Shown: in pieces, positions 41,731 to 62,842 of the stretch
How positions within the stretch are numbered: position 1 is the first letter of the stretch
How the letters are laid out: every line of letters begins with the position of its first letter
Origin: Octopus sinensis
Lineage: Eukaryota
NCBI RefSeq assembly: GCF_006345805.1
Contig: NC_043004.1
Coordinates: 63,674,001 to 63,738,000, forward strand
DNA: 64,000 nucleotides
Direction of reading: 5' to 3'
Notes under the pieces: generated by a model
Seen by the model: the letters and a program-made list of their open reading frames with translations, nothing else
What the model was told of the DNA's origin: nothing
Database searches by the model: none
Made by a program: the position numbers and the translations under genes

Positions 41731-41763
41731 ACCGCTGAATAGTAGCGAGATGCCGGGAACAGA
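41731..41763 (+). CDS. Candidate micro-exon C, copy 0 (33 nt, PLNSSEMPGT)
   Basis: T-run-acatttcag| ... |gtaagta; only the phase-2 frame is open. Confidence 0.55.
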
Positions 41764-43589
41764 GTAAGTATTCGTTTATTGAAATACTTAAACGCCCCTT
41801 CGTTATGGTATCCGTTATATAAATACATTTATAAAGACATTGTTCCCCAATTCCTTTCTCTGTATACAATCATCACATACCCAGAGCATTACGTGATATT
41901 CACAAACTTCTTATTTGACAACCCCCAGAATTTTACATTACCATAAACCAAATTCGACATATACTTTGTGCAAATGTGTGTGTGTATGTAAGACTTTGTA
42001 CATATTTGCGCACGTGTGTGTATGTATGTATATATGCATTTCAATGTGTGTGCGTATGTATACGTATGAGTATGCAGAGGAACATGTATATATGCATATG
42101 CGAAAAGCACCAAATGTTTCATAGCTTCAATATGTGATAAAATATATGACAAATCCGAAATTTCGCAACCAGGTGCATATATATGCAAATAGGAACTACT
42201 GAGCGCACACACTTAGAATATATATGTGAATAAGATATATGTGCAGACATTCGTAAGTACGTATATGTGTAGAGACATGCGAATGTATGTATGTATGTAT
42301 GTATGTATGTATGTATGTATGTATGTATGTATGTATGTATGTATGCATGTATGTATGTATGTATGTATGTATGTATGGATGTATGACTCTATCTATCTAT
42401 CGATATATCTATCTATCTATGTATCTATATATGTATCTATCTTTCTATCTATTTATCGCTTTCTCTCTCTCACTCTATATCTACCTATCTTACTACCTAT
42501 CTATCTATCCATCTATCTATCTATCTTTCTATCTATCTATCTATCTATCTATCTATCTATCTATCTATCTATCTATCTATATATATATATATATATATAT
42601 ATGTGTGTGTGTGTGTGTGTGTGTGTGTATGTTTGTATACACAAATTCATGAGCATACATACCAACATATTGAGGGTCATGTATGTGTGAGTAAACGATG
42701 TGTAAATATACATATACACACAAAAACACACACACATATATATATATGTGTGTGTGTGGGCCTGTGTACTTGTGTGTGTGTGTACATGTCTGCGATTTAG
42801 TTTGTGTGTATGGATGGGTATGTGTCTGTGCTGTTGAACAATTTGCCAGATGCATTTCAGGATATATTTTATAATTTCATTAGGCAATTCCTATCTACCG
42901 TAAACTAAACATATTTTATTAGAAAATTGCTGACATTCTTCCCATGAAATTTCAGTCAACTTAATTTAATGAATTCACTAGGAGTATCGAAGTCTTGGCA
43001 TGAATTCACACTAGCAGCAACATTCCAAATGTTGTAATCCATTGAATTTAAATCTGATGAATTTTATGTACACTAGCCTCAATGTTTCATAATCATTAAC
43101 AATGTCAGGTAGGCATACTTGAATTTTACAATATATTTTGTATTCATGTGTGTGTGAGTGTTCGTAGAATTTTTGCGCACGTGTGTGTATGTATGTATGT
43201 ATGTGTCTGAGTATGCAGGCAGATGTATGTGTTTGATATGCGCGCATTCGTATGTATCTCCTTGCGTCGATATATACGAATGTATGTATGTATGTATGTA
43301 CAAGTGTATGTATGTACCTAAATATCGGTCGATCTAACTATCGGTATATCTATCTATTTGACTATATATCTATTTGTCTATGTAGCTATGTATGTATACA
43401 TGTATGTATATATGTATGTCTCCATCTATTTTTATCGTATATATCTCCCTCTAACCATCTATCTATCGATCTACCTATCTGTTTGACTATCTATTTGTCT
43501 CTATCTATTTATTTATATATATATTTATCTCTCCATCTATCTACCTGTCTGCCTGTCCGTCTGTTTATATATCTATCTCTCTATCTATC

Positions 43590-44135
43590 TGTATAACTTG
43601 AAAAGCAATGTGAGAATGGAGAGGCAGGTTTCCTCTATTGAAAGTTTCAAAAAATGAGGGTGAATGTGGCAGAGGTGGTTCGTGCGAGGGATGGAACCAC
43701 TTTTGATCCTGTTAATCGAGCAGAAAGAGAGAGAAGGAGCACTTTGCTCTGATGTGTTTGTTATTTCCTTGCCTGTCTTTTCCGTAGGCTTTTCTTTCCA
43801 CGGATAAACCTAATTTGGCTTCTTACATTTCAAAAATTTCTTCTGTGATACACAATCCCTTTTGATCGACTTCTTTTGGCCCCCGACCCCTTTTGATCGG
43901 AAGTTTACTTTTTTCCTCTTTTTCACTCCTTTTCTTTGTCATTTTCGAAAAGAAAAGCTCTACATTTGTATTTGTCCCTTCTGTGTTCAGCCTTGTGTGG
44001 TCAATAAAGTAAGTTATCTATCTATCTATCTATCTATCTATCTATCTATCTATCTATCTATCTATCTATCTATCTATCTATCTATCTATCTATCTAGCTA
44101 TCTAGCTATCTATCTATCTAGCTATCTATCTATCT
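43590..44135 (+). mobile_element. 5'-truncated Tx1/L1-like LINE (ORF2 end, 3' UTR, AATAAA, (TATC)n tail)
   Basis: LKSNVRMERQV...FKK..VNVA is homologous to the end of ORF 45484-47064; caataaa then (tatc)n. Confidence 0.75.
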
Positions 44136-47100
44136 ACGCTTTCAAATGTCTGACAGGTTCCGACTAGACCACCTGAAGGCGCCAACGTGGCCATGGAGCA
44201 ACGGCATCGGGTCGTCGAGATCGTATCTAGATAGGATACTGTGTAGGACAGTAGATAGAGATAGCATAGGATGTCCACAATTCTACATAGTTAGCTACAC
44301 GGATCACAAACTTGTGACATGTACGCTAGACTTAGGTAAGTCACTTAGGCAGGGTCCCGGATACTGGAAACTAAACGCGTCTTTCCCATCGAGACAAGTT
44401 TTCAGAGACCGGATTAGCACACTAATAAAGAGGGCTTTGACGGGAGCCATCATCAACAACAAATGGTGGTTTGCCCTCAAGAGAGCAGTAAAAGCAGAAG
44501 CGATTAGGTACAGCAAAGCACTAACCATAGATAGAAATAGAGTAGAGGGTGAGCTAGTTAAGAAGCTAGAACAGGCAATTAGAAGCGGCATCGCATCCGA
44601 CGTTTTGGCGGCGAGGTTGGCCCTCGACAAATACTCCAACGCCAAACACGAAGGGTGTGTTTTCAGAGCTAGGATACGTGCTCTAAGGAACGAAGGTGTT
44701 GGAGCCGCGAGAGAGGCCCGGGTGGCAGAGGCGCAACAGGGCAACAAAGCCACCATTCAGTCTCTGGTAGATGAACAGGGGCGCGAATTGATCGAACCAA
44801 GTAAAATGTGTGAGGCCTTTCAACAGCACTTTGCCCGCCTTTTCGGGACAAGTGGCGGGCAAGAACGTAGGGTGGACTTCAGTGCCTACCTACACAGCCT
44901 ACCACGACTCTCGACAAGAGAGGCAGGGTGCTGCGAAGGTGCCATCACGGCGGCGGAAGTGCAGGACGCGATGGCAGAATGCTCGAGGGACAAGTCACCG
45001 GGTTTGGATGGTCTACTCTACGAGCTTTACAATTGTATGCCAGACTTGTTTGGAGATGTCTTGGTAGCGGTATACTGCAACTGGCAGCAAAACGGGAGCA
45101 TTCCTGGTTTTCTGAGCCGAGGAGCCGTAACACTGCTGAAGAAAGATCTAAACAAGTGAAATGTAATAGATAACTTTAGGCCCATCACTCAGCTTAATGC
45201 AGACCTGAAAATTTTGGCCAAGGTGCTAGCCAAGAGGTTGGCGCTTGTCATCGAGAAACTGGTCGACAAGGCGCAAGCATGCGCCGTGCCGGGCCGGACC
45301 ATCCATGACAACCTCCACCTGATGCGCTACATCATAGACAGGGTAGTTAACGAACCTGGCATGGGTGGGGCGCTGATCAATTTGGATCAATCGAAAGCTT
45401 TCGATAGGATGGACCATCGATATTTGGAGGCAGTCCTCAGAGCGGCTGGCTTCGGTCCCGTCTTCCGCGGCTAGATAGCCGCTTTGTACAGAGGCATACG
45501 TTCGGTAGTTCGTGTAAATGGACATCTATCGAGACCTTTCGACATTGCACGTTCGGTCCGTCAGGGATGCCCCCTCTCGTCGCTTCTATACGTATTGACT
45601 CTCGAGCCATTATTGCGGAAGCTGGCAACTTTGAGGGGCATCCCGCGAGAACTGGGATGCGGGACGAGCGTGTCTGTATACGCGGACGACGTCACCGTCA
45701 TTGTGTCTAGCCACGAGCACATCGAGCAGGTCGGCGAGACATTGAAAAACTACGAAGGGGTGACAGAAGCGAAAATCAACCGGGAAAAGTCAGTGGGCTT
45801 GCGACTAGGCACCTGGAGAAGCAAGCCCATGCCGTCCACCAGCGCCTCTGTCGTGCGACGCTGGACCGACGGTCCGGTCGAGTTGCTCGGGGTCTGGTTC
45901 GGTCCGGACCTCCAAGTGGAGAAGAACTGGAACGAGATAATGAGTAGGGTGGTCACTCTCGCCCGGCAATGGGCCGAGAGGAAACTGTCCCTAAAAAGTC
46001 GGGCGGAGGTGGCGAACACGTACATCGCGTCCGTCATCTACTACCGCCTGACCGTCGTACCTTGTCCCGACTCTACCATCACCAAACTAGAACGCATTCT
46101 CTTTCGCTTCTTGTGGAAAGAATGCGTCCCGATGGTCAGGCGATCCATTTGCTGTCAACACTCGTTAAAAGGAGGACTGGGCATGCCGTGGTTGATGATG
46201 CGCAGACACGCGCTGAGACTGCGACATCTCAGGCTCTTCGTAGACGACGGTGAACAGGTGTGGTCGCCGTTTGTGAGGCACGCTTTCCCGCAGCTCGTCT
46301 CCATGACCGAACTGCAGTCGTGGATCAAAAAGAGGCCGAGGAAGGGCGAATGGCACCGCGAGTGTCGCGTTGCTCTCAAGCAACTATGCCGTCCCGGGTC
46401 GACCTTGAGTGACTCCATCACAACCCAAGCATTCTATAGGGGATTAGTGGAGGTGAGGTACGACGACGACCTCGGGGTGAACTTGGACGTCGACGACGAA
46501 TACCTGACCCGCCTGTTAGGGACGACGTTCGGGCCAGGGCCCATGGACAACTTCCAGAGATCCCTGGCCTGGCAGTACTATCGAGAAGCGCTACCCGTTC
46601 GGGATAAGCTCTATAGGCATGGCTCGAAAAACACGGGGCCGACCTGCCCGAGATGCGGTCAGAGCGACGAAACCGTTCTGCACGCACTCGTGCAGTGTCC
46701 AGCAATTTCCGACCTGTGGGCTTATGTCGAACAACTGTTGTCACGTGTGGGACGAGTCGGTTTATCAGCTGAGTCTATCGTCAATATTGTCACGCCTCCT
46801 TCCTTCAAACGGGAAGGAAGAGCTATTTTCATCATCCTTGTGGCTATGGCGAAGGAATGTATCTGGTGGACGCGTCTGAAAGGATTGGAGACAAACACTT
46901 TCCTCTCTGGTCAATCTCTCATCAACTTCTTCAAGTACCACTTGAAAAGGAAAGTGAGAGTAGAGAGGCAAGTTTTGTCTAACGAATGTTTTAAAAAAAG
47001 ATGGGTAAATGTAGCAAGGGTGGCACGTATGAATGACGAAGCCACCTTGAGCATAATCCTATGAACCCAGAAATTGAAAACAGAGGGTTACCCACTTGCA

Positions 47101-62549: not shown

Positions 62550-62678
62550 CTAAAAACGTAAGCATGGGCAAAATGATGCTGAACTCTCTGCACGGCATAC
62601 AACTCTGCAAGCTCTCCCTTCGAATCTTTTCATGTTGCTCTCAATGTCTGAAACAATGCCATCCGTGTTGGGAAAGAT
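62550..62678 (+). CDS. Candidate exon A, divergent copy (A')
   Basis: 129 nt, gat|gtaagtc; 10 differences from copy 1; no LINE upstream. Confidence 0.4.
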
Positions 62679-62800
62679 GTAAGTCGATTACATCGACACC
62701 AGTGTTCAATCATTTCTTAATGTTGTTGTATTTTATTCCATAAGCCAAATACAGAAATCACAGTAGTAACATATGTTTCTGTTTTCCATTTAAATTTCAG

Positions 62801-62842
62801 ATTAAGATTGGATGAAGGCAGTGTGGATTCTTCGACAGTCTT
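62801..62842 (+). CDS. Candidate micro-exon B, divergent copy (B', LRLDEGSVDSSTV)
   Basis: aaatttcag| ... |gtaagtt; 42 nt; only phase 2 open; 12/42 differences from B. Confidence 0.55.

Follow-up and report, generated by a model that had tools for sequence, protein, structure and literature searches.

The window analysed here, a 64,000-nucleotide stretch of the Octopus sinensis genome, harbours fourteen short exon-like units on the forward strand, which had been proposed in an initial annotation and whose coordinates and lengths (129, 42 and 33 nt for types A, B and C) were all found as claimed. The C-type micro-exons C1 (41731-41763), C2 (51564-51596) and C3 (57403-57435), each of 33 nt, read PLNSSEMPGT, PLNSSKMPGT and PLISFEMEKK in the open frame, and C4 (60059-60091) is identical to C3. 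The B-type micro-exon B1 (50662-50703, 42 nt) reads FRGDEVNADSSSF and recurs unchanged as B2, B3 and B4 (56503-56544, 59158-59199 and 61814-61855), while B' (62801-62842, 42 nt; LRLDEGSVDSSTV) differs from these four at 12 of 42 sites. The 129-nt A units, which are doubtful as coding sequence, lie at 56255-56383, 50414-50542, 58910-59038, 61566-61694 and, for A', 62550-62678. A GTAAGT donor directly follows all 14 units; a TTTCAG acceptor with a long pyrimidine run precedes the B and C units, and the A units in the window are preceded by CCACAG. The combination TTTCAG-N(25-50)-GTAAGT occurs 9 times against 0.31 expected, a count that is no real test of chance because the copies are duplicates.

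A tandem array on the forward strand (49931-62537) has its unit starts at 49931, 55772, 58427 and 61083. The first unit is a long form of 5841 bp, the next two measure 2655 bp and carry a 3.2-kb deletion, and the last is truncated and followed by A'-B'; an additional A''-B'' is found 2.6 kb past A'-B', just beyond the window. Between C1 and the first of the full units sits an inserted LINE fragment (RVT_1, zf-RVT; 44122-47064, forward strand). Upstream in each unit there is also a leader-like 'exon 0' with a TATA box, overlooked in the initial annotation. The repeat-derived block that has both at its end spans 57596-58745, where the leader ends at 58736 and is followed by GTAAGT, and further copies lie on the same strand at 49100-50249, 54942-56090 and 60252-61401. 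Pfam searches of the long ORFs in the window and 20 kb downstream returned LINE reverse transcriptase only, and Rfam recognised no RNA family in the window.

The window contains only two B and three C variants, since the four main 2.65-kb units are 98–99% identical, and the statistical case was built on paralogues elsewhere in the genome. The contrast between exons and introns that had first been noted is present already among these few variants: B and B' differ at 28.6% of sites and the A-B intron at 2.5%, and C3 differs from C1 at 9 and from C2 at 11 of 33 sites (27–33%) with flanks that differ by 2.7–6%. Divergence is uniform, at about 3%, in a 3.2-kb tandem array that lies close by in the window. 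A genome search for more copies returned at least 18 of A/B and at least 17 of C, all at C8:63.23-63.74 Mb on one chromosome and on two unplaced contigs, which supports the earlier proposal of B and C as cassettes that keep the frame and multiply in tandem, with segmental duplication as a further route. The locus is present as five segmental copies on the one chromosome, and 180 kb of paralogous sequence was read out of the 535-kb cluster. Introns are 1–7% apart among the copies, some copies are without B or C (locus L018; C remnants at C8:63385453 and C8:63564015), and the loci are full of LINE, SINE and MITE insertions and rearrangements. Unplaced contig C8943 was considered as an allele but gave no information on allelic variation: its B exons are the same, its A/B part as a whole is 99.4% identical, and its C region is allelic to none of the C8 copies read.

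Across 75 nucleotide columns and 8 distinct same-length copies per cassette (10–12 if flanks are counted), the exons were found to diverge at 3–8 times the intron rate. The mean pairwise difference was 0.33 in B against 0.04 in the preceding intron, and 0.23 in C against 0.05–0.07 in its flanks. In B, 32 of 42 columns were variable compared to 21 of 116 in the flanks (Fisher 2.5e-11), and in C 21 of 33 compared to 50 of 224 (Fisher 3.5e-6), the edge of variability coinciding exactly with the splice sites, AG| and |GT. Cassettes came in two lengths only (42 or 39 nt for B, 33 or 30 nt for C), indels being of 3 bases. The phase 2 frame first claimed for B and C proved correct and was free of stops in all 8 distinct B and all 8 distinct C copies, and the alternative frames met stops in 3–7 of 8 distinct copies. 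In all of the roughly 25 B and C copies the acceptor was intact, the donor was at or near consensus and the frame was open. In this frame pN/pS was 3.6 for B and 1.9 for C, with pS (0.10–0.12) somewhat above the intron divergence of 0.04–0.07. Variability followed a period of 3 and was lowest at codon position 3 (column permutation p = 0.00085), and tree parsimony counted 56 nonsynonymous changes against 7 synonymous ones (omega 2.3, p = 0.019), the significance of omega > 1 standing at only p ~0.02. The codon and divergence analyses thus agree with the initial proposal of diversification: an excess of nonsynonymous, codon-periodic change that leaves splice sites, length class and frame intact. 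Sharp edges, 3-base indels, the open frame and the nonsynonymous excess together imply that B and C behave as coding cassettes under diversifying selection. An all-against-all scan of the 180 kb of paralogous sequence revealed no further hypervariable islands like B and C; the other candidates it brought up were microsatellites or indels in A.

We consider it rather probable that B and C are real coding micro-exons of a young, multicopy, transposon-rich family under diversifying selection, clustered within 0.5 Mb of the O. sinensis genome. Each cassette supplies the last base of one codon at its start and the first two of another at its end, so that any run of cassettes keeps the frame. Tandem duplication of 2.2–5.8-kb units has multiplied the cassettes, and so has segmental duplication of the entire locus, which exceeds 30 kb. 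Residues were then exchanged at a rate several times that of neutral (intron) change, with splice signals, length class and frame retained, a combination that indicates positive diversifying selection on a short, hydrophilic and probably disordered peptide. The product may be an extracellular protein, or one otherwise exposed to partners, made up of cassette repeats of the kind seen in the micro-exon genes (MEGs) of flatworms. Inclusion and skipping of exons could add to isoform diversity.

The same cassettes might be relics, once-coding parts of a dead gene in untranscribed segmental duplicates that keep the signature of past selection, and the lack of a protein-database match, the insertions and rearrangements throughout the loci and the loss of B or C in some copies would fit such a history. 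However, flanking introns that differ by only 4–7% date the exon differences to the time since the present copies arose by duplication; this, together with splice sites and frame intact in all of the roughly 25 copies and youngest units so alike (98–99%) that expansion of the array appears ongoing, makes a relic improbable. Still less probable in our judgement is that no selection on protein is involved, and that mutational or gene-conversion hot spots, or the variable exons of a repeat-promoted non-coding RNA, have produced a coding appearance by coincidence. Start exons that are all repeat-derived, and an ATG-rich leader as in many lncRNAs, could be read in this way, and few sites were sampled. 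A mutational process, on the other hand, would ignore codon position (observed p ~0.001) and the multiple-of-3 rule for indels, and would neither hold one frame open in 16/16 variants nor end at AG| and |GT, while for gene conversion no outside donor sequences were found in the genome.

Another reading, the literal gene model of the initial annotation, takes A as the first coding exon (MSETMPSVLGKI), joined to B and then C. Every A opens C|TAA in the cassette frame (TAA being bases 2–4), and each A-B or A-B-C set would for this reason be a separate ORF of about 27–38 codons, the array then being a string of tiny genes behind their own repeat-derived TATA blocks or a polycistronic RNA. Several regularities are in keeping with this model: A ends in the phase that B requires, with its ATG open through to the donor; A lies 119–122 nt before B in all copies but one; a TATA-bearing block is found 0.2–2.4 kb 5' of the first A in every locus; and the TAA is kept in 13/13 distinct copies. 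The sequence of A itself, however, speaks against a coding start, and this model appears unlikely. A drifts at the intron rate without codon periodicity and carries 1-, 4- and 5-nt indels in the paralogues, and its acceptor is purine-rich in most copies. Ahead of the proposed ATG there are three others in A, of which the first has a strong Kozak context (A-3/G+4), and four more in 'exon 0'; the proposed ATG itself has T at both -3 and +4. The encoded peptide has no hydrophobic core and no signal-peptide character, although the cassettes evolve like typical exposed proteins. The start and donor moreover are inherited from a SINE-like repeat: the forward-strand segment 56334-56415, which covers part of A and the beginning of its intron, is about 80% identical to an abundant dispersed repeat and holds the proposed ATG, 12 codons and the GTAAGT donor, and other copies of this repeat likewise carry GTAAGT. 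ARAGORN made no tRNA call on copies of the repeat. The frame of the first ATG (MGKMML...) was also considered and rejected; it is open in A but has stops in C and B', is broken by the 5-, 4- and 1-nt paralogue indels and shows no purifying pattern.

In our preferred reading, with B and C as coding micro-exons, 'exon A' and the block with the TATA box and 'exon 0' are probably intronic or leader sequence of repeat origin and not the coding start. The block is itself a dispersed repeat, with three full copies on other chromosomes (70–75% identical) and at least 30 copies of its last 300 nt (about 71%). A candidate 5' coding exon is found on the forward strand at 33973-34029, 7.7 kb upstream of C1, with an ATG at 33989 in a GNNATGG context and a signal-peptide-like translation (MDRFSLMLAAILI). 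It breaks off after the second base of a codon, where GTAAGT follows, and this phase matches what B and C need. Upstream of it are a TATA-like box near 33800, a leader that lacks any ATG and runs to 33912, and an intron of 60 nt. This exon sits within a copy of a very abundant repeat (33899-34101), and the candidate start exons are without exception repeat-derived. Hypothetically, the gene may start with the signal-peptide-like exon at 33989-34029, although no start in the window was convincing. The initial annotation had placed the rest of the gene outside the window, which may be wrong for the 5' end, given this phase-matched exon; for the 3' end, no stop or terminal exon was found in the window or up to 20 kb downstream. 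A possible last exon where the repeat block begins (aatag|GGCTTGG, with a stop after 6 codons and AATAAA 208 nt on) was rejected because its acceptor is a deletion junction found only in the two youngest units, and another past the (CT)n tract 3' of the last B showed neither a variation island nor a poly(A) signal. No constant exons were identified among the sequence read.

Searches with 5-residue words of the cassette peptides gave no match in a collection of 5.8 billion sequences (proteins of 26–178 aa), from which it follows that there is probably no annotated protein; if the collection contains the gene models of this genome, the gene is unannotated. Nothing relevant was found in the literature on micro-exons in octopus or other cephalopods.

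The coding region of MEGs consists mostly of very small symmetrical exons whose lengths are multiples of 3, so that any subset remains in frame (Philippsen et al. 2015, PMC4350168). They encode short, hydrophilic proteins in which no domain is recognisable. Evolution of the mature part is rapid, with dN/dS exceeding 1 in some families, and transposable elements abound at the loci (PMC4350168). The octopus cassettes resemble them in being symmetrical, with phase 2 on both sides of B (42/39 nt) and C (33/30 nt), in their fast, nonsynonymous-biased evolution (pN/pS 3.6 and 1.9; 56:7), in their transposon-rich loci and in their short, hydrophilic peptides, and on these grounds the system may be classed as a flatworm-MEG-like one in a cephalopod. 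MEGs have, however, been reported as restricted to flatworms and all their products carry a signal peptide (PMC4350168), whereas here the host is an octopus, the sequences show no similarity, and a signal peptide is present only as a repeat-derived candidate. The octopus cassettes also differ in having been amplified as recent tandem repeats along with their introns. MEGs are further characterised by protein variants made through micro-exon skipping, by expression in glands or exposed epithelia, and by secretion. Judged by sequence, any relation to the flatworm MEGs is convergent and not by descent. A more tentative possibility is that of an octopus-lineage family, built largely of transposon-derived parts, in which amplified symmetrical micro-exons would supply a secreted, perhaps combinatorial, repertoire of cassette peptides as a convergent counterpart to the MEGs, the first outside the flatworms.

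Conserved introns around hypervariable mature-peptide exons are familiar from conotoxin superfamilies, snake venom PLA2 and three-finger toxins, genes which have few exons of normal size, a conserved signal/pro region and a cysteine framework. The octopus cassettes likewise outpace their introns with an excess of nonsynonymous change, but they are only 11–14 codons long and their translations have no conserved cysteines. The variable exons of arthropod Dscam1, which constant exons flank, measure 120–300 nt and code for Ig half-domains; docking/selector RNA pairing makes them mutually exclusive, and they evolve under purifying selection. Tandem-duplicated exon variants in one locus and the potential for combinatorial isoforms are shared, whereas none of these Dscam1 properties was seen at the octopus loci, where the cassettes measure 30–42 nt. 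The introns at the octopus loci are too alike, owing to recent duplication, for selector elements to be singled out. The polycistronic small-ORF peptides of tarsal-less/polished rice (tal/pri) have a conserved common motif and are not hypervariable; if A were used, the octopus array would similarly be tandem ORFs of 27–38 codons with a common N-terminus, but with the common part unconstrained (approximately at the intron rate) and the variable part under selection.

Micro-exon genes have been viewed as a flatworm peculiarity tied to parasitism (PMC4350168). Finding the same design in a free-living cephalopod (symmetrical micro-cassettes with conserved splice signals, in loci rich in transposons and with divergence biased to nonsynonymous change) would indicate a general route to rapid peptide diversification. 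The usual targets of diversifying selection are prey, pathogens, gametes and self/non-self partners, and the expressing tissue, once found, would open the question of the target of selection in octopus. A probably unannotated locus is also flagged in a much-used genome. The copies are young, with introns 1–7% apart, and allow the process to be watched, from the residues that are changed and the duplication of units to the way in which repeat fragments come to supply splice sites and perhaps a start.

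The window is AT-rich and crowded with microsatellites and retrotransposon pieces; Pfam searches of long ORFs in the window and the 20 kb downstream of it gave no conventional protein domains, and an Rfam search of the whole window gave no RNA family. The initial annotation had described 14 exon-like units of three kinds on the plus strand between 41731 and 62842, termed A, B and C, and their coordinates, their lengths of 129, 42 and 33 nt, respectively, and the GTAAGT donor after each were verified. The acceptor is TTTCAG behind a long pyrimidine run in B and C, and CCACAG in A. 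The units of the tandem array start at 49931, 55772, 58427 and 61083 (periods of 5841, 2655 and 2656 bp) and their copies are 98–99% identical, the short units corresponding to the long unit minus 3.2 kb. This array is the largest of its family, with 10 cassettes including a further A-B pair just beyond the window end. On the minus strand, a pyrimidine tract, AG and GTAAGT delimit a 50-nt element (48395–48444 and 54186–54235) that has been duplicated along with the array unit; as it has stops in all three frames, it is probably a pseudo-exon that arose by chance or was carried in by a repeat.

At least 18 A/B copies and at least 17 C copies are present in the genome, all of them within 63.23–63.74 Mb of this chromosome or on two unplaced contigs, which seem to be alternative assemblies covering some of that interval. 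The family is made up of five segmental copies of one locus, found in both orientations, with a common layout: one to three C exons spaced by 2.2 kb, a 1.15-kb repeat-derived block 7–8 kb after them, and one to four A-B pairs spaced by 2.6 kb and followed by a C exon or C remnant. One unplaced contig, C8943, is 99.4% identical to 63.23–63.24 Mb of the chromosome and has two A-B units compared with four there; it represents either a collapsed assembly or a haplotig differing in copy number. The other, C9074, bears the same A-B unit.

The divergence originally reported for the cassettes was found to be correct: B differs from B', its counterpart in the last pair of the window, by 28.6%, compared with 2.5% for the preceding intron, and C variants are 27–33% apart with flanks at 2.7–6%. 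As it contains no more than two variants of B and three of C, the window alone is too small for a statistical argument, and rates were compared among 10 distinct B copies and 12 distinct C copies, distinctness being counted with flanks. The mean pairwise difference was 0.33 in B versus 0.04 in the preceding 113-nt intron, and 0.23 in C versus 0.05–0.07 in its flanks; variable columns numbered 32/42 versus 21/116 for B (Fisher 2.5e-11) and 21/33 versus 50/224 for C (Fisher 3.5e-6). The switch from invariant to variable sequence falls exactly after the acceptor AG and before the donor GTAAGT, and lengths are restricted to 42 or 39 nt in B and 33 or 30 nt in C. An all-against-all scan of 180 kb of paralogous sequence revealed no further hypervariable islands like B and C, the remaining hits being microsatellites or indels in A, and a comparison array in the window with a 3.2-kb tandem unit diverges uniformly by about 3%.

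The phase-2 frame proposed in the initial annotation is open in 16 of 16 distinct full-length B and C variants, while the other two frames have stops in 3–7 of 8 variants. B has a pN/pS of 3.6 and C one of 1.9 in this frame, compared with values below 1 in the other frames, and pS (0.10–0.12) is somewhat higher than intron divergence. Diversity per column at codon positions 1, 2 and 3 is 0.28, 0.47 and 0.19 in B and 0.31, 0.28 and 0.08 in C, a 3-periodicity in which the third position is least variable (column permutation p = 0.00085), and of the changes counted on a neighbour-joining tree, 56 were nonsynonymous and 7 were synonymous (omega 2.3, binomial p = 0.019). Islands of this kind might also arise from a mutational hot spot or from conversion by unseen donors, but neither process would conform to codon position, reading frame, length of indels and splice boundaries simultaneously. 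B and C are therefore taken as coding cassettes in which amino acids have been replaced under positive selection after the copies arose. The original observation is thus upheld and strengthened, and for B and C the earlier reading of tandemly amplified coding cassettes under diversifying selection is supported; we consider it reasonably probable that B and C act, or acted until recently, as such cassettes.

The description of A as a coding exon is probably wrong. Its diversity (0.03–0.06) is intron-like, with no codon periodicity in any frame, its paralogues contain indels of 5, 4 and 1 nt, and in most copies the sequence ahead of its acceptor is rich in purines. Upstream of the proposed start are three ATGs, the first of which is flanked by A at −3 and G at +4; at the proposed ATG both of these positions are T. 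Every copy of A opens with C followed by TAA in the cassette frame, so that a B-to-A or C-to-A splice would end the frame at once. The segment formed by roughly the last 50 nt of A, where the proposed ATG and the GTAAGT donor lie, and roughly the first 30 nt of the intron matches an abundant dispersed SINE-like repeat at about 80% identity, and GTAAGT also occurs in other copies of this repeat. Before each A of the main units lies a block missed at first, in which a TATA box is followed by an approximately 240-nt leader containing four ATGs ('exon 0') and by a GTAAGT donor. This block is itself a dispersed repeat, with full copies on three other chromosomes at 70–75% identity and at least 30 copies of its last 300 nt at about 71%. 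The evidence does not single out A as coding, although A may still be a repeat-born first exon.

Candidate 5' ends were sought on the plus strand as ATG-initiated segments that reach a good donor after the second base of a codon, and only one of the 15 obtained was both hydrophobic and non-microsatellite. Its ATG at 33989, in a GNNATGG context, begins an exon encoding MDRFSLMLAAILI with a donor at 34030. Upstream of this exon are a 60-nt intron that has a good acceptor, an ATG-free leader ending at 33912 and a TATA-like box near 33800. The exon is on the same strand as the first C exon, 7.7 kb upstream of it, and has the same relative place in both other plus-strand loci. Positions 33899–34101 belong to a MITE-like repeat that is very abundant, with 694 or more candidate copies of about 80% identity, and whose consensus contains neither the acceptor AG nor the ATG; both were acquired in this locus family, and the result is a signal-peptide-like mini-exon that ends at a GTAAGT donor. 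No excess variation was seen in this exon, a fourth copy of it is not followed by C exons, and it could be linked to the cassettes simply because the two were duplicated together. The exon at 33989 is nevertheless put forward as a possible true 5' end of the cassette gene. A 3' end was not found in the window or the 20 kb downstream, where there is also no recognisable domain; two candidates were considered but rejected. Beyond the window, at 63744642–63745524 of the chromosome and some 5 kb past the last A-B pair, are inverted duplicates of 170–300 nt with 94–99% identity.

No protein of 26–178 aa in a collection of 5.8 billion sequences shares 5-residue words with the A, B and C peptides, and the cassette gene thus appears unannotated, provided that the collection includes the gene models of this genome. 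The closest known design is that of the micro-exon genes (MEGs) of schistosomes, whose coding region consists mostly of very small symmetrical exons, whose products all have a signal peptide and vary through exon skipping, and whose loci are transposon-rich, with dN/dS above 1 for the mature part in some families (PMC4350168). MEGs are described as confined to flatworms (PMC4350168), and no paper on such genes in cephalopods was found. Symmetrical micro-exons and accelerated nonsynonymous evolution are common to both systems, whereas the signal peptide, universal in MEG products, has only a candidate exon in the octopus locus. Unlike in MEGs, the octopus cassettes have been amplified as recent tandem repeats together with their introns, and the candidate start exons, like at least one splice donor, come from repeat fragments. 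Descent from a MEG family is excluded; the locus would work like a MEG as far as is visible, without being a member by homology. That it is an active MEG-like gene for secreted peptides seems rather doubtful.

Two copies of another dispersed repeat (32000–32081 and 39060–39141) end in AACGT followed by GTAAGTG, so that several octopus repeats bear ready-made consensus donors, which raises the GTAAGT count of the window (51 versus 34 expected). LINE remnants are located at 15942–17075 and 30566–31282 on the minus strand and at 45475–47064 on the plus strand; among them, one 377-aa ORF corresponds to the linker between endonuclease and RT in non-LTR retrotransposons (5853 homologues), and RVT_1 was found in two ORFs, one of which additionally has zf-RVT. 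Positions 1–2000 are GC-rich (0.51) and strongly C-skewed (−0.52), unlike the rest of the window, and include a CT-rich 54-nt tandem repeat at 1627–1730. Three tandem copies of a 3.2–3.5-kb unit at 20418–30100, uniformly diverged by about 3% and without hypervariable islands, contain minus-strand ORFs of 156–243 aa with no Pfam match, and a 570-nt piece of this unit recurs as an inverted version with 70% similarity at 63136–63709, downstream of B'.
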